Below are positions 2,722 through 57,091 of a DNA stretch of 64,000 nucleotides, piece by piece. Within the stretch, counting starts at the first letter, position 1, and each line of letters begins with the position of its first letter. Made by a program: the position numbers and the translations under genes. Under the pieces are notes generated by a model that was given only the letters and a program-made list of their open reading frames with translations, did not search any database and was not told the origin of the DNA. Location of the stretch: positions 124,001 through 188,000 of IMG/VR virus record IMGVR_UViG_3300032116_014939; one strand, given 5' to 3'.

Positions 2722-5700
2722 TTACTCACTAATAGGAATAATACTTTGGTAAATATCAAATCCTTTTTTAATTTTACTTAACAGTTTTTGATAATTTTCG
2801 TTATTGGTTTGTATATAGTCATTAAAAATTGTTGGAGTATTAACTACTTTATTATAAGGGAAATATTCTATCCAAAATTTTGAAAATTCATTTGCAAACG
2901 TATCTTTGTTTATTATATCATTTACGTTATTATTAATGTAATCAGGGTATGCCGCAATCATAAAATCATATAAACTGTTTTCTCTTTCAAAGACTGCATA
3001 TGTTTGTGTATATTGGCTGGTGTTAGTTAAACACATGAAATTTGAAGTAATATAGTTTTTAAGTTCACCATGGTAATCGTAATCTAATGTTACTCCCGCG
3101 ATATTATTACCAAAAAACTGCAAACGATTTGTTGTTTCATTTATAGATAATCCTGATTCAATCCAACAACTAATAAAAATACAAAGTCGAACTTTATCAG
3201 TTGTAGGCAATACTTTAATTGCCGAAACAATAACATCAACACCTTCATTTTTAGTAAGCCCTGTGTATTTTGTATAATTAGAGTAAGCTTCATCTTTATT
3301 ACAATTTGGGGTATTAGACATTATTTTACCACCAATTATAGAATTAGTTATACTATTTTTTATTTGTACAGAATTGTTTGGTATACCTGTAGTAGACCCA
3401 CCTTGATTTTTAAATGTACTACCTAAATTAGTTAATAATTGTTTTTTAATTGTTTGGAAAAGTGTATCCACTTTTGGTAATGTAGCAACCGCCTGTCTTG
3501 TACCCGTAAATGATGTTGTAAAATCATCTAATCCTATACTATGGTTCACTTCAGTAATAAAATAAGACCCTGCAAATAATGGTATATTTCTTAAAACAAA
3601 ATACATTGATGGTTGAATCATTACGTTACCCATTGATTCAACAGACGCAGCGTAACTTCTAGTTTTATAAATGTTATATAAACTAACACTTTGTGTTGAT
3701 GTTTGAATTCCAGCACTTGAGTTAGCTAAATTATACTCAGCCATTAAGGATTCACTTGTTGCCTTACCTAAATCCTGACTTACATTTATTTTTTTGAAAA
3801 CTCCTTGATTTTGTAATTCAAAGTCAACCGCAAAACCAACTATTCTATTTTCTAAAGAAAAGTTTCTTTTTTGAGACGCATCAACCCCAACAGAATTTTC
3901 AGCACATATTGTAATATCTAAACCATCATCTTTATATCCATTAAGTTTGGATTTGTTATCCGTTTGTTGTGAAGGTTTATCAACAAATATATTTAACATT
4001 TTTGGTTTTGAGCTTTGATAATCAACAGTATCAAATGTTCCAAATAAATTGTTCGCAAATTCATTTGGTTCAGTATTTTTTGAAGTATCATCCTGTCCAG
4101 TTGGAGTTTGTCTTCCATAAAAATTAATGTATGATGGCATTAAAAAACTAACAAAATTATGGTCTTTTATTATTGAACCGACAACTGTAAAAACGTTTGA
4201 TTTAAGATTTGCACCTTTTAAATACGAATTAACTTTTGTAATATCAACAAATATATCACCAACATTTCTATTTGCTCTGTCAACAAATAAATAATCTTTA
4301 AATAAAGGAGCGTCAGAGTTTTCATCAATTTTTGTATAATCATTTCCAGCAATCCATTTATCATTAATTGCTTTAAACATATCATATAATTCAACTTTAC
4401 TTTGAAACCCTTCTAAAACCGAATCAATTTTTTCAGTATTTGTATTACCACCACCTAATTTTTTTTGTAAAGATGTGATAAAATTTGTGAAAGTTTCACC
4501 CGATAAATTATCAGTAATATTTAAATAAGTGTCTATTTTATTTTTAAAAACATCAATATTTCCAGAATTACCCAAAATTGATGTTGTTCCATACATTTTA
4601 ATTAAATTTCTAAATAATTTAATATTATCAACTGTAAAACCTATATTGAAAACTCTAAAGAAGTTAGTTAAATAATTTTCAGAAGCGTCGTAGTTTAATC
4701 CATCAATTGTTGAAAATCCGACATAAAGTTCCATAGTATTCCACTCGTTTGGATATAGAGCCTTTGATTCACTATAAGTTATACCAAAGTTAGTCGGCAC
4801 TGAATTTGGCGTTATCTCATAGTTTGGGATATTATATCGATTTACTATTTCAGGAGACGGATTTGATGAGAGTATATTAAACAAATTTTTATCAAACCCA
4901 GTCGGATTTCCTCGTTTAATTAAAATATCGTATTGTAACGAGTTTGTTATTGTTGTACTAACATCATAACTTTGTGAAATGGCAATACTTTTAACAATTT
5001 CGTTATAGTTAACTCCAATAATATTCTCAGATTTTTCATTATAGAATGTTATTTTTTTAAGTATTGACTCAAAAGAATAAACACTTGAACTTCCCTGATT
5101 TGCAAATTTTAAAAATTCAATTTCAAAATTATTTAATTCTTCAGTATCAAAAACAGAAAATAATTCTTCAATGTTTGAATAAATAAATTCAGAAAATAAT
5201 TCAAAACTTACTTGTTCTTGTTTATCGGAATAAACTTTTTTAAGATATTCATTATAACTAGATTTTCTAATTGGTGTTGTATTAAAATACCCATAGTTAG
5301 GTGCTCCCCAAAATAACCTTACCGAACCGTTATGAATACTTGGATTGTTTGAAAGTGAGATTATGTTATTATTATTGCCGTCAAAACATTCTTTTTTAAT
5401 TTGATTAGTTGTTGTACCAAAAGAAGGACATATTGTATAAGACTCCTCACCTTCCGAATTACTAACTTTAATTAAAACAGTCCAAGTTTTTAAATTAATG
5501 TTTGAAGATTGGATATTTGATTGGTCAGCATTAAATAAAATAATTTCTCGGTTATCAAGTGCGGTTTGTAATGCGTTTTGTATATCTAATGAAGTTGTGA
5601 CTGAGTTTGGGTTATATAAATAAGAACCATTATGTAAAAAATAAAAATCATTTACCAGTTTTGGATAAAATCCAATATGATAATTTATTGATGATGTTTG

Positions 5701-8700
5701 GGTATTTTCTAATGTAATTGATGTTGTATTAAATGTTTCTGAAGACAAAACATAAGTAGTTGATGCCAAATTGTTAATCGGGTCAAAATTATTTAAATAA
5801 TTAAAATTAGTCCAAATAGGTGTAATATAATCAGTCCCATCATTAACATAATTTTTATATCGGTTCCAAATTGAACCTAATTTCAAAATCCAAAAGTATG
5901 GTAACCTATGAACACCACCAAATTTCTTTAAACCAGCAAAAATAAAATCAGAATATGTATTTAAATTATTTTCAAATGACAAATATCTTTCTTTTAATGT
6001 TGATAAAGGTAAACTGTTTAAGAAAAGATAAGACGCTTCTAAATAGGCACTACTTTGACCATTTAAAGTTGCGTTAATACCTTTTTGTATTGCGTTAATA
6101 AAATAAGGTGTATTAAGAATTGAAGTTGTTTGTTTATTGGTTAATTCAGAGTCAATGTAATTAATAAACCCTTCTGTCGGTAAAAATTCTGTAGATTTTC
6201 TATTATTATAAAAAGTTTGTAAATCAACAGGTAGTGTTATTTCATTAGACCTCCAATTATAATCAGTATATGGTCGTAGTTTTGTTTTATTACCATTAGT
6301 ACCGACAACTGAAGAGTCTTCAAAATTTGTAACTTTTTTAAAGTATGTGTTATAATAAATTGAAAACTCTGTTGAGTTTATGTTTTTAAACTTTGTATTA
6401 TTTTGTCCCGCAGCTAAATTAGCGTAATTCCAATTTGAATCAATATATGGATATGTATCAGTAAAACTAATGTCATTATGGACATTAGAATTTAAATAAT
6501 TTACCATGTATTTTTCTTTGTCATTGGTTATTTGAATTGTTGGTAAATCTTCAAATAAAATTTTATTCGGATTTTCATTAACTTCTCTTTTTAAATAATC
6601 AGTTACAAAATACCCTTGTGAATAAATTGAATAATCCTGTTGTAAATTAACAAGTTCAGAAAAATAAGAATCTTTAGTAAAGTTCGATGTTTTAAAAAGA
6701 AAATTTAATCTTGGTGAATTTTCTCGATTACCCGAATTTAAAGCGTTAAATACATTCAGACTTTCTGTTTCAGCTAAGTAGTTTAATATATTTTGATTAG
6801 TTGAACTGTCATTATTTTTTTGAAATCCGTTATATTGTGTTATTGTTTGAATTCTTTCCCAAACTTCATATAAAAATTTACTTTCAGTTAAATTACTATA
6901 TGGCTCATTACTTGGTAACGTATCAAACCCTGAAATTAAAATTCGATTAATACCTTCATTAGTCGGTGTTGGTGGGATTGGGGGTATTTCTCTTTGTAAA
7001 TAACCTTTTAAAAACTCTTCGACAAACTCGACTTCAGGCCAAATAGTATAATTATTTCCTTTAGTTATCGATATAACTGAATTATCGCCAGGATATTGTA
7101 TTTCAAATTTCACTTGACCATCAATATTTTTTTCAACTACAAATTGAGGCCAAGGATATACAGGTGATAACTGTGATGCAGAATCATTTTTAGTTACTAA
7201 CTTTTTTATTTCACTGTTTCTAACATCAAATGCTTTTTTATGAACATCTTGCATTAATCTTAAAAAGGCCTCTGCAGATGCCATGATAACCGCAACTACA
7301 TTTCTTATTGTTGGTGAAAATCCTAATCCACTTGTTGTTTGTATAAAACTTGATAATTCTTTAGTAAGTTTATCTTCAATTAATGTTTTTTTATCATTTA
7401 ATATTTTATCTAACTCATATGTTAAATCTAAAAATCTACTTGCCCCATCAAATTGAAATAAAAATCCAACTTCACTTTCTTTAAAAATATTTTTTAAATT
7501 ATCAATCTCATTGACAATTGATGTGACTTGGTCTTGATTTACTGTTTCCACATTATTTCTTTGTTTATATGTTTCAACATAATCAATATTAGTATCATCA
7601 GTTCTTATATTTTGAATATCTATTGGGTTTTCAATTTTATATTCACCTGAACCAAAAGTTGTATTATTTTTTAAATTTTCATTATTTTGTGTAATAATTG
7701 ATTGTAATTTAGAATATTGGGAATCAATATCACTGATTGCAACTGTATCTAATTTTTGAAAATTTGATAACTTATAAGTGTAGATTTTATATCTGACATT
7801 ATTGATTGGGTTTGAAATAAAGAAATTCGTAGCATCTAAATTTAGATTAAACCACGAAGTAGTAAAATTATAAATTTCTCCACGATATTGTGTTAAATCT
7901 TGTGAGTATGTATCAATATCATTAAGCGGTGTTAGATTTGATTGACCAAATTTTGCTAAACTATAATTGATAAAATTATCCAATTTTGTTGATAACTGTT
8001 GTACCGTTAATTCGGGGAAATCTTTCGGAATTAATCCTAAGTTTTTATAATCAGTATAAACATCTCTAATCTTTTCATACCCAAGTTGAGTTATTTGTTG
8101 GGTATTAGTTTGTGTTTGATTTCCAGTATTTTCACCTTGTGACACATTAGTTCTTTTAAGATACATCTGTGGAACCGCAAAAAGTTCCGCCATTGTAATA
8201 TCGGTTAACACATTAAACTTATAACCAATCATTACCAAACTAATATCAAAATTACCTGTAGATGAATTAAATGAAGATGTAAATTTTTGTAAAATTAATG
8301 GGTATCTAACCGCCTTACCATAGTAACCTTTAAGTGTTAAATAAAATGTTGGGTATGGTAAATTAAAAAACGCAGAATATGGTGAATTTTCACCACTTTC
8401 AAATAGAGCTCTACCTTTAATATCTTCTAAATTTATTGTAATTGTTGGGATATAACTTAAACCTACTCGGTATGAAATCCCTTTTATTCCAAGAAGTTGA
8501 TTAGCAATTTGGTTTTGATTAGCAGTTGTGTCTTGTATTCCCGTCCATTCAGTAGTTAACGCACCTGTCCCTGTAGGATTTAAAAAATTCATACTTGCCA
8601 ATGAAACTGTTTTTACAGTGGTTTTGTCCGCCCCTGAAATTAGTCTACTTCTTGGTTCAAGGTCACACTCTAAATTAGCGTAATAAATTAAGTTTTCTTG

Positions 8701-8811
8701 TTTTATATTTCTATCTTCCGCATTACCATATTGGTTAGTAACCTTATTTGGGTTAATAACAAAAATGTTATCACATGTACTTGGAAAAACGTATATATTC
8801 TCACTGTCCAT
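2722..8811 (-). CDS. Baseplate hub protein (T4 gp27/P2 gpD-like) with large insertions and a possible C-terminal muralytic domain
   Basis: N-terminal GIKGISYRVG...PTITINLEDIKG; C-terminal hub signature GSYFITEVNHSIG..FTTSFTGTR; follows the gpU/gpX-like genes. Confidence 0.65.
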   Translation of the reverse strand: MDSENIYVFPSTCDNIFVINPNKVTNQYGNAEDRNIKQENLIYYANLECDLEPRSRLISGADKTTVKTVSLASMNFLNPTGTGALTTEWTGIQDTTANQNQIANQLLGIKGISYRVGLSYIPTITINLEDIKGRALFESGENSPYSAFFNLPYPTFYLTLKGYYGKAVRYPLILQKFTSSFNSSTGNFDISLVMIGYKFNVLTDITMAELFAVPQMYLKRTNVSQGENTGNQTQTNTQQITQLGYEKIRDVYTDYKNLGLIPKDFPELTVQQLSTKLDNFINYSLAKFGQSNLTPLNDIDTYSQDLTQYRGEIYNFTTSWFNLNLDATNFFISNPINNVRYKIYTYKLSNFQKLDTVAISDIDSQYSKLQSIITQNNENLKNNTTFGSGEYKIENPIDIQNIRTDDTNIDYVETYKQRNNVETVNQDQVTSIVNEIDNLKNIFKESEVGFLFQFDGASRFLDLTYELDKILNDKKTLIEDKLTKELSSFIQTTSGLGFSPTIRNVVAVIMASAEAFLRLMQDVHKKAFDVRNSEIKKLVTKNDSASQLSPVYPWPQFVVEKNIDGQVKFEIQYPGDNSVISITKGNNYTIWPEVEFVEEFLKGYLQREIPPIPPTPTNEGINRILISGFDTLPSNEPYSNLTESKFLYEVWERIQTITQYNGFQKNNDSSTNQNILNYLAETESLNVFNALNSGNRENSPRLNFLFKTSNFTKDSYFSELVNLQQDYSIYSQGYFVTDYLKREVNENPNKILFEDLPTIQITNDKEKYMVNYLNSNVHNDISFTDTYPYIDSNWNYANLAAGQNNTKFKNINSTEFSIYYNTYFKKVTNFEDSSVVGTNGNKTKLRPYTDYNWRSNEITLPVDLQTFYNNRKSTEFLPTEGFINYIDSELTNKQTTSILNTPYFINAIQKGINATLNGQSSAYLEASYLFLNSLPLSTLKERYLSFENNLNTYSDFIFAGLKKFGGVHRLPYFWILKLGSIWNRYKNYVNDGTDYITPIWTNFNYLNNFDPINNLASTTYVLSSETFNTTSITLENTQTSSINYHIGFYPKLVNDFYFLHNGSYLYNPNSVTTSLDIQNALQTALDNREIILFNADQSNIQSSNINLKTWTVLIKVSNSEGEESYTICPSFGTTTNQIKKECFDGNNNNIISLSNNPSIHNGSVRLFWGAPNYGYFNTTPIRKSSYNEYLKKVYSDKQEQVSFELFSEFIYSNIEELFSVFDTEELNNFEIEFLKFANQGSSSVYSFESILKKITFYNEKSENIIGVNYNEIVKSIAISQSYDVSTTITNSLQYDILIKRGNPTGFDKNLFNILSSNPSPEIVNRYNIPNYEITPNSVPTNFGITYSESKALYPNEWNTMELYVGFSTIDGLNYDASENYLTNFFRVFNIGFTVDNIKLFRNLIKMYGTTSILGNSGNIDVFKNKIDTYLNITDNLSGETFTNFITSLQKKLGGGNTNTEKIDSVLEGFQSKVELYDMFKAINDKWIAGNDYTKIDENSDAPLFKDYLFVDRANRNVGDIFVDITKVNSYLKGANLKSNVFTVVGSIIKDHNFVSFLMPSYINFYGRQTPTGQDDTSKNTEPNEFANNLFGTFDTVDYQSSKPKMLNIFVDKPSQQTDNKSKLNGYKDDGLDITICAENSVGVDASQKRNFSLENRIVGFAVDFELQNQGVFKKINVSQDLGKATSESLMAEYNLANSSAGIQTSTQSVSLYNIYKTRSYAASVESMGNVMIQPSMYFVLRNIPLFAGSYFITEVNHSIGLDDFTTSFTGTRQAVATLPKVDTLFQTIKKQLLTNLGSTFKNQGGSTTGIPNNSVQIKNSITNSIIGGKIMSNTPNCNKDEAYSNYTKYTGLTKNEGVDVIVSAIKVLPTTDKVRLCIFISCWIESGLSINETTNRLQFFGNNIAGVTLDYDYHGELKNYITSNFMCLTNTSQYTQTYAVFERENSLYDFMIAAYPDYINNNVNDIINKDTFANEFSKFWIEYFPYNKVVNTPTIFNDYIQTNNENYQKLLSKIKKGFDIYQSIIPISE

Positions 8812-9124
8812 AATAATAGAAATATTCTTTCACTGCTGTTTTATAATCTAACAAAGAACTCAATAAAGGGAATGGTATATTCAGCACGGCATTATCAGGA
8901 ATATTTAATTCAGAACCACTATATTGTGGATTTGACTGTAATATCAACCAACCATAAAATGGTGAGTTATAATATAACTGAGAAACTTTATCTAATCTTG
9001 ATACCCCTAACTTATAGATGTATTTCTTATCAGTAGTTTTTAATGGAATATTAACAAAAGGGATATATGTAGTTGTTCCATCAACAGTAAAATTTTGGTA
9101 TCTATTGTAATATTCGTTAGCCAT
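8801..9124 (-). CDS. LysM/P2 gpX-like baseplate protein
   Basis: YIYKLGVSRLDKVSQLYYNSPFYGWLILQSNP...LNIP pattern; canonical position before the hub. Confidence 0.7.
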   Translation of the reverse strand: MANEYYNRYQNFTVDGTTTYIPFVNIPLKTTDKKYIYKLGVSRLDKVSQLYYNSPFYGWLILQSNPQYSGSELNIPDNAVLNIPFPLLSSLLDYKTAVKEYFYYYGQ

Positions 9125-12100
9125 CAGTCAAAAATTATTTTTCCGTTAAAGGTCGTTTTATCTAAATTAACATTCACATTCGAATACAAATTTTTCAAAT
9201 TTTCGTTTTGTGTAGGAGTCGCACCTGCACTTGTATAAGAGAAATTTCTTGTTTTTCCAACAATACTTTGGTTTGACACTTGTGGATTATAATTTTTATA
9301 ACTTAAATAGTCAGGTGAATTAAAGAAAGTGTCAACCTTATTTGTTTGTGCATTTTTTTCAACTGTAAAACTTGAGACTAATCCATTAATTGTAGTTTCG
9401 ACAATACTTTTTGTTAACTGTACAGTATCTGAAACTAAATTTAAAGTTAAATTATTAATTAAACTTTGCCTTGAATTGTTATCAATTATTTCATTACAGA
9501 AAAGAGTGAAAAATCTATTTAAATTACCCGCAATATTTTGACTTGATATAGGTGTAAATGTTGTACTTGGAGTTGTCACGTCAATAATAATATCATTAGA
9601 ATTCAATAATGTATAGTATGATTGAACGTCAGAGGCTAATTTAATATAGTCAGTTCTTATTGAGGTTAGTGTATCACTTGCCCCGTCAGGTAATCCTGTA
9701 AGAGTATAAACATAAGGACTTCCAAGTGATGTGATTTTACCATCAGTCGCTGAACATATTAAATCAAGTTTTCTATAATTTTGATATATTCCAACTTGTG
9801 TATTAGAAACACTTTGTATTTGACTAGATATTTTAGAAATGATATTATTAACCTGATTTGATACTTGGGATATATAATTAGCCCTTACCGCTCTAATGTC
9901 CGATGTTGATACATTATTAACAATTAATGCTGAAATTAAAAAATCAGTTCCATTAGTAATTTCAGTACTTAGTTCATTTGCAACATTTAAAAGATAATTG
10001 TTGTAATTAACCATTTTACCAAGTATCTTAACGTTTGTAACGGGTGTATCTAAACTATTCAATGAACCTGTTACAAACTGTTTTTCAGAACTTACTTGTT
10101 TATAAACACCATAGTTTGTGGTTTGAACAATTTTTGTCACAAAACTTTCAATATTATTAAAATAGTTTTGAGTATAGACAACTGTGTTATCAAACAAACC
10201 ACCGTATAATAATGTACCCGTTTCAACACCACCTGAAGTTTGTGAATTAGTAATATTCCCAGCTTGTGTACCCCCATTATTTGTTATTTGGGTATTAAGT
10301 TGATTACTCATAGAAGGTGTTGAATTCGCAAATGCCGCATTTGCCTGACTAATATTACTTGATTGTTGATTACTTAAAATGAAAGATTCAACATTAGTAT
10401 CATCAGTTGCATCCGCTCTTTCATCGTATACTTCAGTATTTGCATAAAAATTAAAACTCAAAGCATTTTGAAGTTTTTCAATTGGTTCTTTTAGTCCGTG
10501 ACCACCAATCATTTTAAAACCAAGTTTAACATTAACAATCGCTGGTTGCACACCAATTCCTTCAGGATTAAAATCTAATTGTTCATAAGTAAACGATAAT
10601 GTATCAGGTACAATTTTACAATTATAAAAATCACCAACTCTTAAAATTAAAATTGGAGGTCTACCAAAATTAGTATTAAATGCGTCTTTGTTTTTAACAC
10701 CTCCTTGATTATCAGTTGTTGTAGGTATGGTTCTACCTGGTCTTACACATTGATTTAAAAATGTAATTCTTGAGTTAAAACCTTCAGGTGTTATAGAATG
10801 GAATAATGGATTAAAAAATTTAATTCTTTGTTTAATACCATCATATAAAAATGGGTCAGAGTTTTTTATCGTTTCAAAATAATTTTGTTCATTTAAAAGT
10901 TCTCTAATAAGTCTTTTTGTTACATTTTTTAATTTACTCTGAAAATCGGCAACAGGTACTTGTTTTAATCCAAAAGTATTATTATAACCTTCACTCACCG
11001 ATTTAGCAACTTTTGTACCAAATGGTGTATACGGTTGTACAGTAATTTTACTGATAACCAAAGTACTACAAGCAACACGGATTACATTATATTCATCGGC
11101 AATATTATTACCATTACAATTATAAGTTTGACTACTATCTTTAGGTTTGTAATTATCAATAGTTCCAGAGTTAACATCAATTTTTAATCTTCTGGAGTCA
11201 ACATACTCTGAAATATTTGTACCTTGATATACAAGTTGATTAAAATATTCAATAATACTTTGTTTTCTATCTTCACCTAAATTTTGTGATTCAGGCCCCG
11301 AAATACCACCAACACCAAAATTAGTAGCCTTTAAATCTATTTTAACCTCATTGTTATTAACTAAAGCATCCGCAATTTCTTGAGCTAATTCAATAAAATT
11401 ATTGTAATTTGGAGTTATTGTATTTTCTAAAAAACTTTTAGAAGCATCAATACCATCAAAAGATTCAGAGTTTATATTTGTGACAAGTTGGTTATATATG
11501 TTTTCATATGATTGGTCATAGTTACTATTTTCTGTAGTATCAGCATTAAAATATATTCCGTTACCAACATATGAACTTAAATTAGGTAATTCTTTTGGCC
11601 CTGAATTATCCTCTTGTGGTATTTGTGTTAGAGCGTCTACTTTATCACTTTCTGACGTATCTAAACTTTCCAATACCTGTTGATAAACTTCGTCAATAGT
11701 ACCTAAACTTAATGAACTAAATTTCTGAGCTAATTCATATATATCATACCTTTGACATCCTGCAAAAAATGAATCAACTACCGATGTTATAGTTGAGTTA
11801 GATTGATTTTGTAATTCTTTATTAACAATTAAATTTAACACGGACGGATGGTCAACAATAATTTTAAAATTTATACTACCCGACCTTTTAGTATTTTTAT
11901 AAGTATATATTGGTTCAGGTCTACCGATAAAATCAGTTTCATTAAATGATGGTGTAGAACTATCATCAAAAGTTAAATCGTATGGAGGGAACCACATAAT
12001 TCTACCACCATTAGGCCCTTTTTCTGCCGATGGAAGTTGATTATATTCAGGTGTGTCTTTCCAAGCTAAGTTTTCTAAAGACAACATGTATTTTTTTACC

Positions 12101-13902
12101 TGTCCGTTAATGACATTTGTCCCACCATTTTTAAAAGGTGTAATATTAAGATTGTAGGTACTATCTAAAACAGAATAAGTAAACCTTCTAATGTTACCAT
12201 TAGTTTCTAAACCTGAGTCATTAGCAACTGTTTTTTGTAAATTAGCATAAGTGTAATAAGGTTTATCTTTTGTAAAGATTCTACAATATTCTTGTCCTAC
12301 CTCAGTACCTGAGTTATTAACATATTTTTTAACTTTTGAACCTTTGGTTAATATTTTATAACCATCTGAAAATACTTTAGACACTTGATTAATTGCGTTT
12401 CCAACATGTCCCAATCTATCAGCACCTTGAGCAGGTGTTGAGTTAATTAATCGTTGTGTAACATCTAAAATAGAACCAGGTCTAAATGTATAGTTAGTAG
12501 ATAAAACTTGATTGTAAGAAGACGCTAACGGTGTAAAATTTGGATTATTACTTAACAACTGTCCACCTTGTCCAACATTTCTTCCAGCTTCAGGTTTTGT
12601 AAATTCTGTAATCCAAACAAATCCTCCATCAAAAGAAGGTTTTTGTTCGTAATTTAATCCAGCTAATCCAAACTGAAAATTTTGGTCACCTTCATATAAT
12701 ATACCAACCTTATCAGGCCCATATACAGGAGCTTGTGTTGGTATTCCAAAAGCGTCTATAGGCGAAGCGTTTGGTGGTGATACAACATTTGTAATGTCCG
12801 TTTCTTGTCTACCAACATAAAGGTTACCTATTGAAGTAAAATTATCAAATAAATTATTAATAAAATTACCAACCTGTGTAGATGTTATAGCGTAGTTAGG
12901 TTTAAACCTATTGTAGTTAAGTGCGTTAAATAAAACCGATTTTGTACCAGCACCTGTATTTTGTAAAAATTTAATTGACGGGTTTGGTCTGTTTGTAATA
13001 TTTCCACCACCCAAATTACCAATAGCTTGTAGTGGTCGTAATCTTAATATTTCAGTATCAGAAAAATAACTTCCCTCAATAGGTGAAGCGGGTAAATAAG
13101 TACCACTTAACTTTTGTATGAAAAACGCAGCGTAATCTAATAGACCGTCAGGTTTTGTAATAGTATAATCTCTATAAACAAAAGGTTCTTGACCTGTGGC
13201 TAACAACGTCGCATTAAATGGATTAGTTAAAGTATCAAGATTAATTGCTCCAATAGTATTTCTTTCAATTTCTCTAGCAATACGGGCTTGTGTAGCTTCT
13301 CTCAAACTTTGAGCCGCCAATTGTTGTAAAAATGAGTCGTTAGCTAATGCGGCGTCACCAAATAATATTTCGTAATTAGTATAATCTCCCTGAACAAATA
13401 TGATTGGAGCAACTTTACCATCACCATATATTTGTGAACCAGCAGGTAACTTACCTAAAATTAAATCAGATGTAACGAATAAATCCTCATAACCATCAGG
13501 TGGTAAATACCTATTAACAACTTCAGCATCATCAATAAATGCCTCATTGAATAAATCCATTCTTGATGTTTGTAAGTCATATGGTTGTGATGTACCTAAA
13601 GGGTTATTTTCAGTACTTCCTCCACCAGGAAGAACCGTATTATCAACAACTAATGCCCCATCAAAAAATTGACCTGCGGGACTATACAAATTCATTCTTG
13701 TACTATACGCAGGTTCAACATATAAGTTTGAACTTACACTTTCAGAATCTGCCGGTGAATTGTCTTGTAATTTAATTGGATAGTTTTGTAACCCTTGGGG
13801 TGAAGTAAAATTACCCTGAATACTATACGGTGCTAAATTCCTTGCAACTAATGCTTTTCTAAATTGTTCCGAATTGTTGAATGATAAGAATTCTACAGCC
13901 AT
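9124..13902 (-). CDS. Large baseplate/tail-tube-initiator protein (P2 gpU/gp48-like domain split by an insertion)
   Basis: WFPPYDLTF...FIGRPEPIYTYKNTKRSGSINF and RPPILILRVGDFY...SFTY...P.IVNVKLGF halves; lies between tape measure and LysM genes. Confidence 0.55.
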   Translation of the reverse strand: MAVEFLSFNNSEQFRKALVARNLAPYSIQGNFTSPQGLQNYPIKLQDNSPADSESVSSNLYVEPAYSTRMNLYSPAGQFFDGALVVDNTVLPGGGSTENNPLGTSQPYDLQTSRMDLFNEAFIDDAEVVNRYLPPDGYEDLFVTSDLILGKLPAGSQIYGDGKVAPIIFVQGDYTNYEILFGDAALANDSFLQQLAAQSLREATQARIAREIERNTIGAINLDTLTNPFNATLLATGQEPFVYRDYTITKPDGLLDYAAFFIQKLSGTYLPASPIEGSYFSDTEILRLRPLQAIGNLGGGNITNRPNPSIKFLQNTGAGTKSVLFNALNYNRFKPNYAITSTQVGNFINNLFDNFTSIGNLYVGRQETDITNVVSPPNASPIDAFGIPTQAPVYGPDKVGILYEGDQNFQFGLAGLNYEQKPSFDGGFVWITEFTKPEAGRNVGQGGQLLSNNPNFTPLASSYNQVLSTNYTFRPGSILDVTQRLINSTPAQGADRLGHVGNAINQVSKVFSDGYKILTKGSKVKKYVNNSGTEVGQEYCRIFTKDKPYYTYANLQKTVANDSGLETNGNIRRFTYSVLDSTYNLNITPFKNGGTNVINGQVKKYMLSLENLAWKDTPEYNQLPSAEKGPNGGRIMWFPPYDLTFDDSSTPSFNETDFIGRPEPIYTYKNTKRSGSINFKIIVDHPSVLNLIVNKELQNQSNSTITSVVDSFFAGCQRYDIYELAQKFSSLSLGTIDEVYQQVLESLDTSESDKVDALTQIPQEDNSGPKELPNLSSYVGNGIYFNADTTENSNYDQSYENIYNQLVTNINSESFDGIDASKSFLENTITPNYNNFIELAQEIADALVNNNEVKIDLKATNFGVGGISGPESQNLGEDRKQSIIEYFNQLVYQGTNISEYVDSRRLKIDVNSGTIDNYKPKDSSQTYNCNGNNIADEYNVIRVACSTLVISKITVQPYTPFGTKVAKSVSEGYNNTFGLKQVPVADFQSKLKNVTKRLIRELLNEQNYFETIKNSDPFLYDGIKQRIKFFNPLFHSITPEGFNSRITFLNQCVRPGRTIPTTTDNQGGVKNKDAFNTNFGRPPILILRVGDFYNCKIVPDTLSFTYEQLDFNPEGIGVQPAIVNVKLGFKMIGGHGLKEPIEKLQNALSFNFYANTEVYDERADATDDTNVESFILSNQQSSNISQANAAFANSTPSMSNQLNTQITNNGGTQAGNITNSQTSGGVETGTLLYGGLFDNTVVYTQNYFNNIESFVTKIVQTTNYGVYKQVSSEKQFVTGSLNSLDTPVTNVKILGKMVNYNNYLLNVANELSTEITNGTDFLISALIVNNVSTSDIRAVRANYISQVSNQVNNIISKISSQIQSVSNTQVGIYQNYRKLDLICSATDGKITSLGSPYVYTLTGLPDGASDTLTSIRTDYIKLASDVQSYYTLLNSNDIIIDVTTPSTTFTPISSQNIAGNLNRFFTLFCNEIIDNNSRQSLINNLTLNLVSDTVQLTKSIVETTINGLVSSFTVEKNAQTNKVDTFFNSPDYLSYKNYNPQVSNQSIVGKTRNFSYTSAGATPTQNENLKNLYSNVNVNLDKTTFNGKIIFD

Positions 13903-13915
13903 CTATACTTTTTTC

Positions 13916-13923
13916 TATAAATA
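13916..13923 (-). promoter_or_regulatory. Putative late promoter TATTTATA
   Basis: 13 nt upstream of ATG 13902. Confidence 0.65.
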
Positions 13924-15966: not shown

Positions 15967-15974
15967 TATAAATA
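15967..15974 (-). promoter_or_regulatory. Putative late promoter TATTTATA
   Basis: 10 nt upstream of tape measure ATG. Confidence 0.65.
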
Positions 15975-18387: not shown

Positions 18388-18395
18388 TATAAATA
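18388..18395 (-). promoter_or_regulatory. Putative late promoter TATTTATA
   Basis: 3 nt upstream of HAD gene ATG. Confidence 0.6.
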
Positions 18396-21913: not shown

Positions 21914-22962
21914 AGTATTGTGGAAACTAATTTTATAGTACTACTTAAACTTCCATTTGTTTTAACGACAGTAATTGATAATTCATCACTATCATTAATT
22001 TGTATATAACCTGTTAACAACTGTGTTGAACTATCACCGTAATATAAACCATTAATGTATATTGCATAAGAGTTAACATTTTCACTACCCTCAACCTTTA
22101 TGTTTGCAGTATAATTAAAAGTTTGAGTATATGCGGTGGTACCTACAGGATAATTTGCATTAAATTGGTATTGGTCAGGATTTGGGGGTAGTACCTTTTT
22201 TTTAACTTTTTTCTTTCTATTATCTAACTCAACCATAATCAAACTTCTACTAATTGCAGGTTTAACTTGGTATTCTTCTTCATCACTTAAAAACCCTTGT
22301 AAAGTAAAAGCGTAAGATTGGATGTAGTATCTTCTTTTTTCAACATCCATAACAGATTCATCTGAAATTTCATCTAAAGTTATTGGAATATAATGTCCTT
22401 TTATTTTAGTATAAGCCTGACGAGATGAAAATTTTTCAATAACAATTTGATTGAATTTATTCAATTCTCTCATTCTATTACAAATAATTTTAACAGAATA
22501 TTTTATATCTACAGGAACTGGCTGGGGAATTGTGTATATATCCATACCTTTTCTTTGTCCGTCCCAAGTCGGTACCGCAGCGTAATAAAATTGTTTTCTA
22601 TTAGGTATCGTATATTTTAAAGACGGTAATGTACCATATTTTACTTCAGGAGTTCTTACAGTTGTTATAATTGGTGGTTCAACGTTTTTATCTATGTTGT
22701 TAAAATCCCAAGTTTGTGTAAATTGAGCCCAGTTTTGAGTCGTCATTAAAATATCTACAACTTTAACTATTTTACCACTAACAACAGTTTTTAAATCATT
22801 TTTAACAAAATCTAAAAACCCTCTATCTAAATCTTCATGTAAAATAGATTTAGGCAAGTAAGTTCCATCCTTATTGATATCTTCAAGAAGTTCTAATCTT
22901 CGTTCATAACCAATAGGTGGGTATGTAAGGGGTAAAGTTTTTTTAATTTTAGGTAATCCCAT
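21910..22962 (-). CDS. Tail terminator / sheath stabiliser (T4 gp15-like)
   Basis: DLDRGF, PPIIT, PQPVPVDIKYSVKI, QIVIEKF, RRYYIQSYAFTLQG; next to the neck gene. Confidence 0.65.
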   Translation of the reverse strand: MGLPKIKKTLPLTYPPIGYERRLELLEDINKDGTYLPKSILHEDLDRGFLDFVKNDLKTVVSGKIVKVVDILMTTQNWAQFTQTWDFNNIDKNVEPPIITTVRTPEVKYGTLPSLKYTIPNRKQFYYAAVPTWDGQRKGMDIYTIPQPVPVDIKYSVKIICNRMRELNKFNQIVIEKFSSRQAYTKIKGHYIPITLDEISDESVMDVEKRRYYIQSYAFTLQGFLSDEEEYQVKPAISRSLIMVELDNRKKKVKKKVLPPNPDQYQFNANYPVGTTAYTQTFNYTANIKVEGSENVNSYAIYINGLYYGDSSTQLLTGYIQINDSDELSITVVKTNGSLSSTIKLVSTIL

Positions 22963-23477
22963 TATAATCCTCTAAATTCGTTTTCCATTACAGGAGATGC
23001 GTTTATTGTTCTATAAAACGGTTTGTATCCTGCATAAGTATGTTTGTTATCTGAAACAACACGTCCGTCATTATTAACTACATAATATCTAACTCTACTT
23101 TCAGTTTCGTAATAACCAATATAATCACCATATTCTATATCAACTCCTAATTCATCAAGGTGTGATTGATATACTGATATTCTTGCGTTTCCCGGCTCTA
23201 ACTGATTAATCTTACTTGTCCCAAGAAATTTATTTTCAGGGGCAACAATTTGTAAAAAAGCCTTAAACTCAACAGGTGGTAAAAATTTAATTCCGTCAAC
23301 AGACGCTTCACCATATACATCATCTACATTTGTCTTCTGTTTGTCAACACGATATAATACAAGAGTGAAGTTCATATCACCTTCTAACCATTCTCTACCC
23401 ATGTTGATATCCAAATTGTAATCTTCTGCACCGAAAAATTTACCTAATCTTGTTATTGGAACTATTCTATTTGACAT
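22962..23477 (-). CDS. Neck / head-closure protein (T4 gp14-like); start moved to ATG 23477
   Basis: MSNRIVP...LYRVD...DDVYGEA...LDELGVDIEYGDYI; TATTTATC motif at 23481-23488 immediately upstream. Confidence 0.7.
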   Translation of the reverse strand: MSNRIVPITRLGKFFGAEDYNLDINMGREWLEGDMNFTLVLYRVDKQKTNVDDVYGEASVDGIKFLPPVEFKAFLQIVAPENKFLGTSKINQLEPGNARISVYQSHLDELGVDIEYGDYIGYYETESRVRYYVVNNDGRVVSDNKHTYAGYKPFYRTINASPVMENEFRGL

Positions 23478-23534
23478 ATTGATAAATATTTCTTTTTTGA
23501 TTATTATTATAGTTGTATAGTTAATTAAAATATT

Positions 23535-25295
23535 TTGACGACTTCTACGGGACATTTAAGTGTTGAGCAACAAGCAATATCCATTCTTGAAAATTATCAA
23601 GGCTCAAATAACTATATCCTTAAATTAAAGAAACAAATTGAGTCAAATAAAAAGTATGTCCCAACAAGAGCTCAATGTGATTATGTTATTGACTATAATT
23701 CAGTAGTTCCAAAAGTCGCTAAGAAATGGGTTGAGATTGACTCATACTTTTCACAAAAACTTGTTGCCGATAATCCATTCATTAAGGAACCTGATAAAAT
23801 TTACGTTGAAAAGATTTTAATTGAAAAAGATAAATCATATCATATTTGGGGTAAGATTTTTAGTGGTGAAACTATTCATGATTTTTGGATACCAAAAGCG
23901 GCGGTTATCAAACAATACACCGAAAACTTGGTTGACGTTGATTACTCAAAATACGAAAACCGTCCACCACTTACTCACCAAAAAGAAGCAATTGAAAAGT
24001 TATTAAAAAACGACAAGTTTATTTTAGCAGATGACATGGGACTTGGTAAAACAACAAGTACTGTTATTGCTTCGTTAGAAAGTGGAGCTAATAGAGTGTT
24101 AATTATTTGTCCAGCGTCTCTCAAAATAAATTGGGAAAGAGAAATCAAAAACTATACTGACAAATCAGTTTATATCTGTGAGGGTAAGAAGTTTGAACAA
24201 GCGGACTACGTTATTGTTAACTACGACATTCTTAAAAACTTCCATGACCCAAAAGATAAGTTAAACTCAATAATTCTTAATTCAAAGTTTGATTTAGTTG
24301 TTATAGATGAAGCACATTATGTTTCAAACGCTCAAGCTCAAAGAACAAAGATTATAATGGATGTAACCAAGAATATTAAAAAATTATGGTTACTAACGGG
24401 AACACCAATGACTTCTCGTCCAATGAATTATTACAATATCTTAAAACTTATTGATAGTCCTGTAAGTCAAAACTGGCAAGCATACGCAATTAGATATTGT
24501 GGTGGATATCAGTTTAGAGTTGGTGGTAAAAAGATTTGGAATGTTACAGGAGCGTCAAACTTGGAAGAGTTGAGAGAAAGGACTTCTCGTCAAATTTTAA
24601 GAAGATTAAAAACTGATGTTTTAGATTTACCTGAAAAAATTATGACTCCTGTTTACCTTCGTTTGAAATCAAGGTTATATGAAGGATTGATGGGTGAGTA
24701 TTATGATTGGTATAACAACAGACAAGACGAATCAAAGTCATTATCTGTTCAGTTTACAAAACTGATGAAAGTAAGACAAGTAATTGCCGAAGAAAAAATA
24801 CCAATTACAATTGAACTTGCTGAGAACATTATCGAACAAGGTAAAAAAGTTATTATCTTTAGTAACTTTACCGAACCACTTAAAAAGATACACGAACATT
24901 TTGGTAAAAAATCTGTTTATTTAGATGGGTCAACATCAAAACCTGCAAGACAAGATGCGGTTGACAAGTTCCAAGAGAGTGATAAAATACAAGTTTTTTG
25001 TGGTAATATGAAAGCCGCAGGTGTTGGATTAACACTTACTGCGGGTGAAGCTGTTATTATGAATGACCTATCATTTGTACCGGCAGAACATTCCCAAGCT
25101 GAAGACCGAGCATACAGATACGGACAAAAAAATTCAGTTTCAGTATATTACCCACTATTTGAAAATACAATTGAGGGTGTTATCTACGACATTCTGATAA
25201 AGAAGAAACAGATTATTGGTACGGTTATGGGTGATGTTGATGAAAATTCTGTAGATATTGTTGAACAAATACTTAACGAAATCAATAGTAAGTAA
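23535..25295 (+). CDS. SNF2-family (HARP/SMARCAL1-like) helicase
   Basis: LADDMGLGKT, IDEAH, LTGTP, KVIIFS, AAGVGLTLT, QAEDRAYRYGQ. Confidence 0.92.
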   Translation: MTTSTGHLSVEQQAISILENYQGSNNYILKLKKQIESNKKYVPTRAQCDYVIDYNSVVPKVAKKWVEIDSYFSQKLVADNPFIKEPDKIYVEKILIEKDKSYHIWGKIFSGETIHDFWIPKAAVIKQYTENLVDVDYSKYENRPPLTHQKEAIEKLLKNDKFILADDMGLGKTTSTVIASLESGANRVLIICPASLKINWEREIKNYTDKSVYICEGKKFEQADYVIVNYDILKNFHDPKDKLNSIILNSKFDLVVIDEAHYVSNAQAQRTKIIMDVTKNIKKLWLLTGTPMTSRPMNYYNILKLIDSPVSQNWQAYAIRYCGGYQFRVGGKKIWNVTGASNLEELRERTSRQILRRLKTDVLDLPEKIMTPVYLRLKSRLYEGLMGEYYDWYNNRQDESKSLSVQFTKLMKVRQVIAEEKIPITIELAENIIEQGKKVIIFSNFTEPLKKIHEHFGKKSVYLDGSTSKPARQDAVDKFQESDKIQVFCGNMKAAGVGLTLTAGEAVIMNDLSFVPAEHSQAEDRAYRYGQKNSVSVYYPLFENTIEGVIYDILIKKKQIIGTVMGDVDENSVDIVEQILNEINSK

Positions 25296-25308: not shown

Positions 25309-26814
25309 ATGAAATCGTTAAATTTAGTATCAGAGTCATTAGTTAGTCGTATATTAGGTGAGGAAACTCAACCTGAAACCAAATTCTTTATTAACGAAAT
25401 GAAAACCATAGGTATTGATAAATTACCTTACGGTTACGCATCATTAAGAAGATTTATTGACCCTGAAACAATGAAGTTTCATTATCAGAAACATTACAAA
25501 GGGTATGTTAAAAAATTAAATTCAGCTCTTCGTAAAAAAGATTATGGGGATGTTGAATTAGAAAACATTGTTAAACAAATTTCAAAGTATAATACAACAA
25601 TAAGAAACAACGCAGGTGGAGCATTTAATCACGCATTGTTTTGGAAGATGTTATCACCAACCCCACAAAAACCAAGTGGTGAAGTGTTTGAAAAGATTGT
25701 TAAACAATTTGGAACATATCGTAACTTCAAAACTAAATTTGAAGAAATCTCAAGAAAAAGATTTGGTTCAGGATGGTGTTGGTTAGTATTAACCGATACT
25801 GGTAGATTAAAAGTTATGTCGACTTCAAATCAGGATAATCCACTTATGAACATAATAAACAAGGGTGGTTTTCCGTTGTTAGGTTTAGATTTGTGGGAAC
25901 ACGCTTATTATTTAAAATACCAAAACAAAAGAGACGAATATATTGAAAATTTTTGGGACGTAATTAATTGGGAATTTGTTAACGAGTTATACAAATCAAA
26001 AACTGAAAAAAAATTGAACGAATCAATTTCACCAAAAAAACTTTTATACGAAAACGTATCTGATTATTCAGATATTTTTAGTAACAACAAAAATGTTCTT
26101 TGGACTTATAGAAGATGTATTGACAATACACTGAAAAGAGTTTTATCTGATAAATGGTATGAAAACAATCAACACTCTGAAGGTTCATCTTCAGGTATTT
26201 ACGATTTAGAAGCTCCTGGTCGTTCAGTAATTAATAAATTAAATACAAACTATATTGGGTTTAAAATTTTAGTTGATGATTTAAATGTGGTACTTACAAA
26301 ATTAAATAAACCCACATTAAATTTTATTGGGGTAACACCTTCACAACAAGTAGAAGAAATAAACAAATTTTGTGAGTATTTGGGTTTTTTTGGTGAAAGA
26401 ATTTTTAAAGGGTCTAAAACTCTTGATAAAATTATGAAACTTTTAAAAAGAACACATGACAAAGGTGGTCAACTTGAAGAGTATGTTGCAAAAAAAATCA
26501 ATCAAGAATTTGGTGAAGGAACTGCTACTGTAGTAGGTAGTTTAGGTTCAAAAGAAGATTTTGCAGGAACTGATTTAACAGTAAATTTTGATAACAAAAT
26601 ACAAAACGCTCAAGTAAAACCAATTTTAAGTATGGAAGTAATTGAAGGTTTCTATCATATCAAAATCAAAGGGTTTGTTAAAAAATTCAATACCGACTTG
26701 TTAATTTTCTCAAATCTTAATAAAGAAGTTTACATTTTTAAAAACAAAACTGTTGCTTTTAGTTCAAGTATGTTTAAAATTCCAACACAAGATTTAATTT
26801 ATACTCTGAATTGA
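25309..26814 (+). CDS. sod: Fe/Mn superoxide dismutase fused to a C-terminal PD-(D/E)XK-like domain
   Basis: FHYQKHYKGYV, NNAGGAFNHALFW, FGSGWCWL, NQDNP, DLWEHAYY; C-terminal EDFAGTDL...AQVK. Confidence 0.85.
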   Translation: MKSLNLVSESLVSRILGEETQPETKFFINEMKTIGIDKLPYGYASLRRFIDPETMKFHYQKHYKGYVKKLNSALRKKDYGDVELENIVKQISKYNTTIRNNAGGAFNHALFWKMLSPTPQKPSGEVFEKIVKQFGTYRNFKTKFEEISRKRFGSGWCWLVLTDTGRLKVMSTSNQDNPLMNIINKGGFPLLGLDLWEHAYYLKYQNKRDEYIENFWDVINWEFVNELYKSKTEKKLNESISPKKLLYENVSDYSDIFSNNKNVLWTYRRCIDNTLKRVLSDKWYENNQHSEGSSSGIYDLEAPGRSVINKLNTNYIGFKILVDDLNVVLTKLNKPTLNFIGVTPSQQVEEINKFCEYLGFFGERIFKGSKTLDKIMKLLKRTHDKGGQLEEYVAKKINQEFGEGTATVVGSLGSKEDFAGTDLTVNFDNKIQNAQVKPILSMEVIEGFYHIKIKGFVKKFNTDLLIFSNLNKEVYIFKNKTVAFSSSMFKIPTQDLIYTLN

Positions 26815-26822
26815 TATTTATA
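26815..26822 (+). promoter_or_regulatory. Putative late promoter TATTTATA
   Basis: 15 nt upstream of the neck gene ATG. Confidence 0.65.
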
Positions 26823-26837
26823 TAAAAATATCATTTC

Positions 26838-27968
26838 ATGAATACAATAATCGCAGAACCTTACAGAAGTCAACTATACACAAAAGTTAGACACGTATTA
26901 GGTGCACCAATTCGTTCAATTGAATTAGAAGATGAACAAATGGACTCAATCTTAGAATTTTCTATCGGAGATTATGCTCAGTATGTACAAGATTGGTTAA
27001 TTGAATCACAATGGACATCATTAAATAATCTAAATTTAGACACACAATCTTTATCAAGAGCTTTTGTAACAAAAAGTTTGGATTTTGAAAATAGATATGC
27101 TCAGGCTTATTCCAAAATAGTTGGGTTACAATCATCACCTCTTGGGGATTGGGTTCTTAAAAAAGATTATATCACATTAGTTCCAAATCAACAAATTTAT
27201 GAAATTCCAGCAGGTCGTGAAATTAATGAATTATTATGGTTTACACCAACCGCTCTTAATAATGTATTATTTGACCCATGGAGTTTTGGTGCGTTAGGTG
27301 GATATGGTATGGCAGGGCCAGCAGGTTATTCTCAAATGGGTTATACTGGTTCATACTTTATGATGCCAGCGTTTGATATGTTGTTAAGATTACAAGAAAT
27401 TAATATTCAAAGAAGAATTATTGCAGGTGATTTAACTTATAGAATAACAGGTTTACCTAATGGTAAAAAGGCAATTCATTTGATGCAAACACCTGGTGGT
27501 AAATTTGACTTCGGTAACTCATCATTAAGAAATTCACAAGTTTGGTATTGGTATTATGATGTTGGCCCTGAGGATAGAGACGCTTGTTTGGCCGCAAATC
27601 CTGATATTATTAAACTACCTTCAGATGTACCTATGAACTCAATTGCATGGGCGGATTTAAATGAACCGGCACAACAATGGGTTAGAAGATATTTTGTAGC
27701 AGGATGTAAAGAAACATTAGCCAAAGTAAGAGGAAAATACTCAGGAAACTTAAAAACACCTGATTCTGAATTAACAATGGATTACGCTTCATTGGCAACT
27801 GAGGGTAAAGATGAAAAAACAAAACTTATTGAAGAATTAATTGGTGCCGACGGTAGATTGACAAGATTACGTCCTGAAAAAATAATGGAACGAGAAGCAT
27901 TAATTGCTGAAAATCTAAACAAACAAATGAAGTTTAGAGCGTTCCCAAGAAATATGTATGTTATTTAA
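26838..27968 (+). CDS. Neck / head-tail adaptor protein (T4 gp13-like)
   Basis: VRHVLGAPIRSIELEDEQM; WVRRYFVAGCKETLAKVRGKYSG...EGKDEK. Confidence 0.75.
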   Translation: MNTIIAEPYRSQLYTKVRHVLGAPIRSIELEDEQMDSILEFSIGDYAQYVQDWLIESQWTSLNNLNLDTQSLSRAFVTKSLDFENRYAQAYSKIVGLQSSPLGDWVLKKDYITLVPNQQIYEIPAGREINELLWFTPTALNNVLFDPWSFGALGGYGMAGPAGYSQMGYTGSYFMMPAFDMLLRLQEINIQRRIIAGDLTYRITGLPNGKKAIHLMQTPGGKFDFGNSSLRNSQVWYWYYDVGPEDRDACLAANPDIIKLPSDVPMNSIAWADLNEPAQQWVRRYFVAGCKETLAKVRGKYSGNLKTPDSELTMDYASLATEGKDEKTKLIEELIGADGRLTRLRPEKIMEREALIAENLNKQMKFRAFPRNMYVI

Positions 27969-34125: not shown

Positions 34126-34153
34126 GATAAATAGTTAAATCCAAGTATTTATA
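34126..34153. promoter_or_regulatory. Back-to-back divergent late promoters
   Basis: TATTTATC on minus (34126-34133) and TATTTATA on plus (34146-34153) in a 47-nt intergenic gap. Confidence 0.65.
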
Positions 34154-57083: not shown

Positions 57084-57091
57084 TATTTATA
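57084..57091 (+). promoter_or_regulatory. Putative late promoter TATTTATA
   Basis: 3 nt upstream of ATG 57095. Confidence 0.65.

Follow-up and report, generated by a model that had tools for sequence, protein, structure and literature searches.

Bacteriophage T4 makes its internal proteins with N-terminal propeptides of 10-19 aa, which direct them to the prohead core before being removed, and the T4 prohead protease gp21 cleaves after the sequence L/I-X-E (PMC9026906). In engineered T4, foreign enzymes joined to such a capsid-targeting sequence (CTS), including EcoRI and staphylococcal nuclease, were packaged, processed and delivered (PMC9026906). Here we describe a gene whose product, SOD-X, resembles such a fusion. 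It lies in a 64,000-nt stretch of DNA (the window) comprising bases 124001-188000 of the 242,064-bp IMG/VR virus record IMGVR_UViG_3300032116_014939, which is ~82% complete. The stretch is AT-rich (~30% GC), many independent studies have yielded near-identical DNA from freshwater and lake-water metagenomes, and the record is that of a 242 kb T4-like jumbo phage of freshwater. The 501-aa protein consists of a 30-aa leader, a Mn-type superoxide dismutase (SOD; aa 36-226), a flexible linker (aa 234-251) and a 250-aa C-terminal module that we call X.

We propose that SOD-X is a precursor protein. The SOD would have been inserted once, as a cassette between the leader and X, and inherited with X since then. 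The leader would act like a T4 capsid-targeting propeptide and carry the precursor into the prohead core, where a gp21-type prohead protease would cut after E30 and after E238 and/or E248, freeing the SOD (~23-24 kDa) and X (~29 kDa) within the capsid, from which both would leave with the DNA at infection. The SOD would then be an active Mn superoxide dismutase, and X would be a nuclease acting through an E...D..D...Q-x-K active site. Targeting, cleavage, packaging, ejection and both enzyme activities are steps that we infer. That SOD-X is a processed and packaged precursor is plausible on circumstantial evidence from sequence and from analogy with T4, and we regard the question as evenly poised. 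We are more hesitant about the fuller proposal of a natural cargo cassette, in which a MnSOD lies between a capsid-targeting propeptide and a resident nuclease with a protease site at each joint and both enzymes are injected; this is a tentative idea that leans towards the doubtful.

Modular architecture of SOD-X

The reading frame of SOD-X is uninterrupted, without stops, and requires no alternative genetic code. The same fused layout is present in at least 48 cluster representatives, with identity in the X half down to ~37%, and X is encoded by at least 374 IMG/VR stretches, so SOD-X is not a chance open reading frame (ORF) or assembly chimera. Its modular architecture is near certain. For the fusion to be an artefact, whether through chimeric assembly, an overlooked stop codon or frameshift, or the calling of two genes as a single one, the open frame and the recurrence of the layout in dozens of assemblies made independently, in a wide range of studies and sources, would have to be explained away, as would the DNA contigs of independent runs that tile the gene, including the SOD/linker junction. 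We found nothing in SOD-X itself that speaks for an artefact; some database entries for stand-alone X are themselves truncated calls of fusions. We consider this explanation exceedingly improbable. Public database entries of SOD-X proteins are labelled merely "superoxide dismutase" or "hypothetical protein". We found no published description of the SOD-X layout or of the X family. The author of an earlier note, made from this DNA sequence alone, did not recognise the architecture.

That note described a complete Fe/Mn SOD with its metal ligands, and this is borne out. Both Pfam domains score well above their cut-offs: Sod_Fe_N (PF00081) at aa 36-116 with an E-value of 1.9e-23 (83 bits, cut-off 27) and Sod_Fe_C (PF02777) at aa 122-226 with an E-value of 7e-42 (142 bits, cut-off 20.9). 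The SOD core aligns end to end with solved MnSODs (E 4e-61; closest 6gsc and 5a9g), and the D-x-W-E-H-A-Y-Y and N-N-A-G-G...N-H motifs align with those of a solved MnSOD. H58, H108, D194 and H198, which from established family knowledge we take to be the metal ligands, and Y66, presumably the gateway Tyr, are invariant in 34 of 34 fusion homologues, as is Q175. The SOD is probably of the Mn type, judging from G103-G104, from Q175 (the Gln in N-Q-D) and from the ranking of Mn models over Fe models; we take a G-G pair before the second His and the Gln of N-Q-D to be Mn-type marks, as is established for the family. The best model is NCBIfam SOD[Mn], yet its score is below the equivalog cut-off (195 versus 363 bits), and because the NCBIfam equivalog cut-offs are missed, this SOD is not an equivalog of E. 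coli SodA.

The phage SODs, at least 62% identical to the SOD of the window, are closer to it than any cellular SOD. The nearest among the cellular SODs have 47-53% identity, and the great majority belong to Bacteroidota (mostly Chitinophagaceae, Sphingobacteriales and Flavobacteriaceae), which hints at Bacteroidota as the SOD donor or the host lineage; a Bacteroidota host for the SOD-X phage is probable on these sequence comparisons. Among other phage SODs in GenBank phage records, none has a match to the X part. A 302,595-bp contig that encodes a SOD 49% identical, from a metagenome-assembled genome (MAG) labelled Patescibacteria, may be another jumbo phage.

The earlier note also placed a ~250-aa domain after the SOD, and X (aa 252-501) is that domain. 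An AlphaFold2 model of X, built on 28 homologues, had a predicted local distance difference test score (pLDDT) of 87 and a predicted template modelling score (pTM) of 0.79. Over aa 383-501, the structural matches were restriction-endonuclease-fold proteins only, namely I-Ssp6803I, Hjc structures, HhaI and tRNA-splicing endonucleases. The top Foldseek match in the PDB was I-Ssp6803I (E 1.9e-3), and the sole named Atlas neighbour was PF11645 PDDEXK_5; the structural scores are moderate, but all top matches share the restriction-endonuclease fold. The helical half of X (aa 252-382) had no convincing structural match. It carries a strongly conserved G-R-S-x-x-N-x-x-N-T-N-Y motif, and conservation across the family is at least 90% at S306, N309 and N326. 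Neither single X sequences nor an X profile had a significant match in Pfam, PHROGs, NCBIfam, PADLOC or PDB sequences, and a survey of weak matches over 57 X members gave only sporadic restriction-endonuclease hits.

D422 is the single invariant residue among 57 X modules whose identity falls to 19%, and E390, D417, G420, Q435 and K437 belong to about a dozen positions that are at least 90% conserved. The order of these residues is canonical for the fold: a long helix carries the Glu, a strand begins with the Asp, and the strand that follows it bears Q-x-K. The spacing from D to Q is 13 residues, the D-to-(E/Q) spacing of Hjc. The EDFAGTD...AQVK motif, in which the earlier note saw a PD-(D/E)XK-like core, lies where it was reported, at aa 416-437 (26554-26619); the fold and the conserved E390, D417, D422 and K437 support that assignment, whereas Gln (Q435) stands where the classic (D/E)-x-K has its second acidic residue. 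X retains two to three acidic residues and the Lys, which reaches the minimum stated for a PD-(D/E)xK motif (PMC3384342). Fold prediction and residue conservation together support the C-terminal half of X as a PD-(D/E)xK-fold, nuclease-like domain, and X is probably an active nuclease. The Gln at position 435 in at least 90% of members, together with the weak and sporadic matches to named nuclease families, would suit a protein that has kept the nuclease fold and lost catalysis, with a DNA-binding or structural role such as internal head protein or DNA-end binder. We think this unlikely, given that two to three acidic residues (E390, D417, D422) and the Lys are retained and that their near-invariance at 19% identity looks like that of an active site.

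Candidate processing sites and the phage head module

Of 147 family members, 135 have a leader of exactly 30 aa. The leader is colinear between fused and stand-alone forms of X and always ends in (L/I/V)-x-E; in 85% of the stand-alone X proteins the sequence at residue 30 is L-S-E. The description of the leader as Glu-rich holds in part: Glu is present, but the enrichment is mild (5 Glu in 35 residues). The linker KKLNESISPKKLLYE is at aa 234-248 (26008-26052), where the earlier note had located it. SOD-X contains six (L/I)-x-E sites, of which four are conserved when fusions with less than 80% mutual identity are compared. Three of the four are at module boundaries, E30 (100%), E238 (81-88%) and E248 (96-98%), and the fourth, E197, is part of the buried D-x-W-E-H motif of the SOD. 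A crude Fisher test of flexible versus structured positions gave a p value of 0.006. E238, E248 and the P3 Leu before E238 stand out amid a variable linker; the P3 residue before E248 is less fixed. Two sites ~10 residues apart are kept in most of the very divergent fusions, and one of these fusions has a single site. In a model of the full-length protein, pLDDT was below 50-55 in the leader and below 50 in aa 234-251. The pTM of that model was 0.48, from which we take the SOD and X to be independent modules.

The head module of the record is collinear with that of T4 and encodes the large terminase, the portal, a 236-aa ORF, a gp21-family maturation protease, an acidic scaffold-like protein and a gp23-type major capsid protein (MCP). 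The protease, encoded at G000:C1:193292-194011 on the minus strand, is a Peptidase_S77 of the gp21 family (PF03420, E 9e-28; phrog_207, E 3e-44) and would be expected to have the matching L/I-x-E specificity. The MCP sequence F-L-I-N-E60|A aligns opposite F-L-T-E65|A of T4 gp23, the homologous cut-site position, and the same MCP site is kept in a relative whose SOD-X is ~50% identical. The end of the SOD-X leader, FFINE30|M, resembles the MCP site FLINE60|A. The 236-aa ORF occupies the slot of T4 gp67/gp68. It has 12 (L/I)-x-E sites, compared with 5.5 expected from its composition, and ranks second in site density among 211 ORFs; most of these sites are followed by S, N or T, like those of the SOD-X linker. 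By position and sequence, this ORF is likely a prohead-core protein that the protease cuts to small peptides.

Several observations weigh against processing of SOD-X. Unlike the T4 CTS, the leader was found on no other ORF of the genome, the extended F-phi-phi-x-E motif is not enriched near N-termini, and distant X proteins have no leader. The (L/I)-x-E motif is short and arises readily in Leu/Glu-rich helices, and the residues directly after E30 are also invariant. The first three of these points favour a different explanation, that SOD-X is an uncleaved, cytoplasmic, bifunctional enzyme in which the SOD is tethered to a DNA-processing nuclease and, working as a single chain during infection, shields, for example, replicating or recombining phage DNA or a metal-dependent active site from oxidative damage. 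The leader would then be an oligomerisation or partner-binding helix, and the L-x-E sites a by-product of Leu/Glu-rich composition, an assignment we hold to be possible and somewhat doubtful. The leader is indeed predicted to be helical, and the gene is flanked on one side by that of an SNF2 helicase and on the other, at a distance of three genes, by that of a family B DNA polymerase. Left unexplained by an uncleaved enzyme are the conserved Glu residues 30, 238 and 248 with Leu/Ile two positions before, which persist in variable, low-confidence segments across sequences of ~37-50% identity, and the flanking of the SOD cassette on both sides by a motif of the type used by the protease and MCP of the phage itself. 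The low pTM of the full-length model also gives no sign of a fixed interface between the SOD and X. On balance, we see this explanation as a real but rather doubtful one.

The X family and its locus

Word-based searches found X in two forms, a SOD-fused form of ~501-519 aa and a stand-alone form of ~278-294 aa on contigs of up to 332 kb. An exhaustive profile search (E <= 1e-3) identified 370 X representatives at 50% identity, and X was always the C-terminal module. Both forms share a locus: sheath ... SNF2 helicase, [SOD-]X, gp13-like gene, an ORF of ~115 aa, and PolB on the opposite strand. On the 332 kb contig this locus is occupied by stand-alone X, and on a contig of 305 kb by the fused form. 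The SOD and linker sit exactly between the shared leader and X; because the leader is 30 aa and colinear in the fused and stand-alone forms, the SOD cassette can be placed precisely between the two. The best explanation is that X is the ancestral core gene of the locus and the SOD is an insert.

The SOD fusions all group within a single X subclade (support 87/95), and fusions of X with other partners form a separate clade. Divergence in the SOD half tracks that in the X half (Mantel r 0.82, p 5e-4), with the SOD evolving more slowly. This pattern fits one old, vertically inherited SOD-X fusion; the co-divergence would suit functional coupling in an uncleaved enzyme equally well. Within the subclade of the SOD fusions, fused and stand-alone states are interleaved, in part a product of several "stand-alone" database entries that are in fact fusions with truncated gene calls.

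Besides the SOD, X trails at least three other N-terminal regions, of ~300, 580 and 850 aa, none of which has a significant Pfam match. In distant phages, X is the C-terminal part of the larger proteins P0271 (1109 aa), P0322 (829 aa) and P0305, P0275 and P0325 (~580 aa), and the N-terminal region is homologous among the three ~580-aa proteins. These N-terminal partners are possible alternative cargo, and, on the cargo-cassette proposal, the other-partner fusions would point to a slot able to take further cargo. In GenBank phage records, X was found only in two copies of a 735 kb uncultured-phage genome and in no cultured phage. In that genome (LR756501.1, L089:5962-6834), among the largest recorded for any phage, X is a leaderless, stand-alone protein of 290 aa with D...Q-x-K intact, adjoining PhoH and radical-SAM genes. 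The X family therefore reaches well beyond the T4-like clade, and at long range the synteny of X with neck genes is not conserved, since in this phage X is not beside neck genes. A contig in a MAG labelled Polynucleobacter (L009, CAYVBV010000039.1) encodes the SNF2 helicase followed by a 517-aa SOD-X fusion, which identifies it as a phage contig binned into a bacterial MAG.

T4 gp4 is a PD-(D/E)xK nuclease needed for head completion and is typical of T4-like "group 2" jumbo phages (PMC1189080, PMC7824862). X could be the head-completion nuclease of this clade, an analogue or far-diverged relative of gp4 with the SOD as a passenger, a role compatible with either processing model. The position of a PD-(D/E)xK-fold protein directly upstream of a gp13-like neck gene throughout the clade suggests such a role, as does the failure to find canonical gp4 (phrog_218, PF08722) in the 242 kb record and five further partial clade genomes (52-82% complete), all of the genomes checked being incomplete. 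On the other side, comparison of the X profile with T4 gp4 by hhalign gave a probability of 0.1%, and neither X nor the stand-alone protein P0016 matches phrog_218, PF08722 or any other PHROG or Pfam family; by sequence, X is not a member of the gp4 family, with no detectable homology. The top structural matches are Hjc and I-Ssp6803I, and TnsA and T7 endonuclease I are not among the matches listed. X is also two times as large as gp4, includes an additional helical domain, and in the 735 kb phage lies away from neck genes. We rate a head-completion role as possible, with more reason for doubt than for confidence; similarly tentative is the corollary that X would work at the portal on DNA already packaged, allowing the gp13-like neck and the tail to join.

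The features of the locus are collected in Table 1. Homologues of the downstream neck protein bear PF26809 Phage_T4_gp13. The listed start codon of the SNF2 helicase is TTG, and the gene overlaps by 21 nt (window positions 23535-23555) the start of a divergent 197-aa ORF (22962-23555, - strand). The tail sheath, tail tube and family B DNA polymerase genes are also within the 64-kb window, as is the SNF2 helicase. Adjoining the tail genes are two giant ORFs of 2029 aa (2722-8811, - strand) and 1592 aa (9124-13902, - strand); the 1592-aa protein and a neighbouring 671-aa protein have no PHROG match.

Table 1. Features of the SOD-X locus and of the record discussed in the text; positions are those of the window unless a record or contig is named.
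Feature	Position	Strand	Basis
SNF2-family helicase, upstream neighbour	23535..25295	+	Pfam and PHROG matches; synteny in L002, L003, L009, L164
TATTTATA gene-start element in the 13-nt spacer from the helicase stop codon to the SOD-X start codon	25297..25304	+	sequence, recurrence
SOD-X gene, putative precursor, 501 aa (P0001)	25309..26814	+	ORF and conserved fused homologues
30-aa leader ending F-F-I-N-E30; candidate capsid-targeting propeptide	25309..25398	+	length, colinearity, conservation
Fe/Mn SOD core, probably Mn-type (aa 36-226); presumed ligands H58, H108, D194, H198	25414..25986	+	PF00081 and PF02777
Flexible linker (aa 234-251) with L-N-E238 (26020-26022) and L-Y-E248 (26050-26052)	26008..26061	+	pLDDT, conservation
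X helical sub-domain (aa 252-382) with G-R-S-V-I-N-K-L-N-T-N-Y	26062..26454	+	AlphaFold2 pLDDT mostly >87
X predicted PD-(D/E)xK (restriction-endonuclease-fold) sub-domain (aa 383-501)	26455..26811	+	structural matches
Candidate active site E390 (helix alpha1), D417, D422 (strand start), Q435-x-K437 (next strand)	26476..26619	+	conservation and AlphaFold2
TATTTATA copy before the gp13-like gene	26815-26822	+	motif scan
T4 gp13-like neck protein (head-tail adaptor Ad2), downstream neighbour	26838..27968	+	phrog_211, E 2.3e-8
236-aa ORF, likely prohead-core protein, outside the window	G000:C1:194750-195460 (= L172:1751-2461)	-	between portal and maturation protease

The claim in the earlier note that SOD-X has its own late promoter is not confirmed. 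The T4 late promoter consensus TATAAATA is found before SOD-X only on the opposite strand, not upstream on the coding strand, and its count in the window is that expected by chance (16 versus 16.7 expected); a sigma-70 promoter scan gave nothing above shuffles. The spacer contains the element TATTTATA instead. The 242 kb record contains this element 73 times. It occurs at most 40-45 nt upstream of 38-39 of ~250 genes, with the hexamer TATTTA enriched 12-fold at -30 to -1. The distance from the element to the ATG falls into two classes, 3-6 nt and 10-17 nt. It precedes the tail tube, SOD-X and gp13-like genes among others, and the MCP, sheath, PolB and SNF2 genes have no copy upstream; further copies in the window, read on the coding strand, are at 13916-13923, 15967-15974, 18388-18395, 34146-34153 and 57084-57091. 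Judged by its sequence and recurrence, TATTTATA is a real gene-start element. It could mark a class of phage promoters or, if the host makes little use of Shine-Dalgarno pairing, serve as a signal for translation initiation.

A 216-nt contig from a freshwater metatranscriptome run (X17) matches the window with one mismatch across 26673-26888, from the 3' end of SOD-X to the start of the gp13-like gene, and a marine RNA run (X20) contains a relative ~91% identical across the helicase/SOD-X junction. The freshwater contig is compatible with transcription across the SOD-X/gp13-like junction; such contigs are also compatible with DNA carry-over and are silent on transcript ends. Overall, what the earlier note observed in the sequence is confirmed in part, and its interpretation of the gene product as separately released, packaged proteins is supported in part.

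SOD-X among described systems

Even without processing, the architecture corrects the annotation of these proteins as "superoxide dismutase" or "hypothetical protein". If SOD-X is processed and packaged, T4-type phages would naturally load host-derived enzymes by insertion behind a propeptide, and a leader combined with conserved L/I-x-E sites at domain joints would give a rule by which the injected proteins of uncultured jumbo phages could be predicted from sequence. Viral delivery of SOD at infection would become testable, with a bearing on oxidative stress in sunlit freshwater and on host responses linked to reactive oxygen species, and delivery of an antioxidant enzyme by a phage would be demonstrated for the first time. 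A large unannotated PD-(D/E)xK family would also be defined, whose members are encoded by a core gene beside a neck gene in a clade without a recognisable gp4.

Compared with other Fe/Mn SODs, SOD-X has both domains complete and keeps the four ligands, Y66 and Q175, and differs in its 30-aa leader and 270-aa C-terminal extension. X shares the core fold over aa 383-501 and the order of the candidate catalytic residues with PD-(D/E)xK nucleases such as Hjc, I-Ssp6803I/PDDEXK_5 and NhoI-type restriction enzymes. It differs from them in having no sequence-level membership in any named family, in the Gln that replaces Asp/Glu and the extra conserved Asp (D417), in being all-beta after the third strand, and in the preceding 130-aa helical domain with its own conserved motif. 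Like T4 gp4, X belongs by predicted fold to the PD-(D/E)xK superfamily and is encoded among the head and neck genes of a T4-like phage, with no other candidate detectable in the clade; unlike gp4, it falls in another structural neighbourhood, is ~2 times as long, has an N-terminal leader and carries an optional SOD.

The closest parallels to the SOD-X layout are in the T4 head itself. As in the T4 internal proteins IPI-III and Alt, the SOD-X leader ends in L/I-x-E, and a gp21-type protease is encoded in the genome. The leader differs from those of the T4 internal proteins in its length of 30 aa rather than 10-19 aa and in being unshared with other ORFs of the genome, and there is no homology to the T4 internal proteins. 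In its order of leader, cargo, site and resident protein, SOD-X mirrors the design of the engineered CTS fusions (Hong, Mullaney and Black), with a foreign enzyme behind a CTS or IPIII, of which, if the precursor reading is true, it would be the first natural counterpart.

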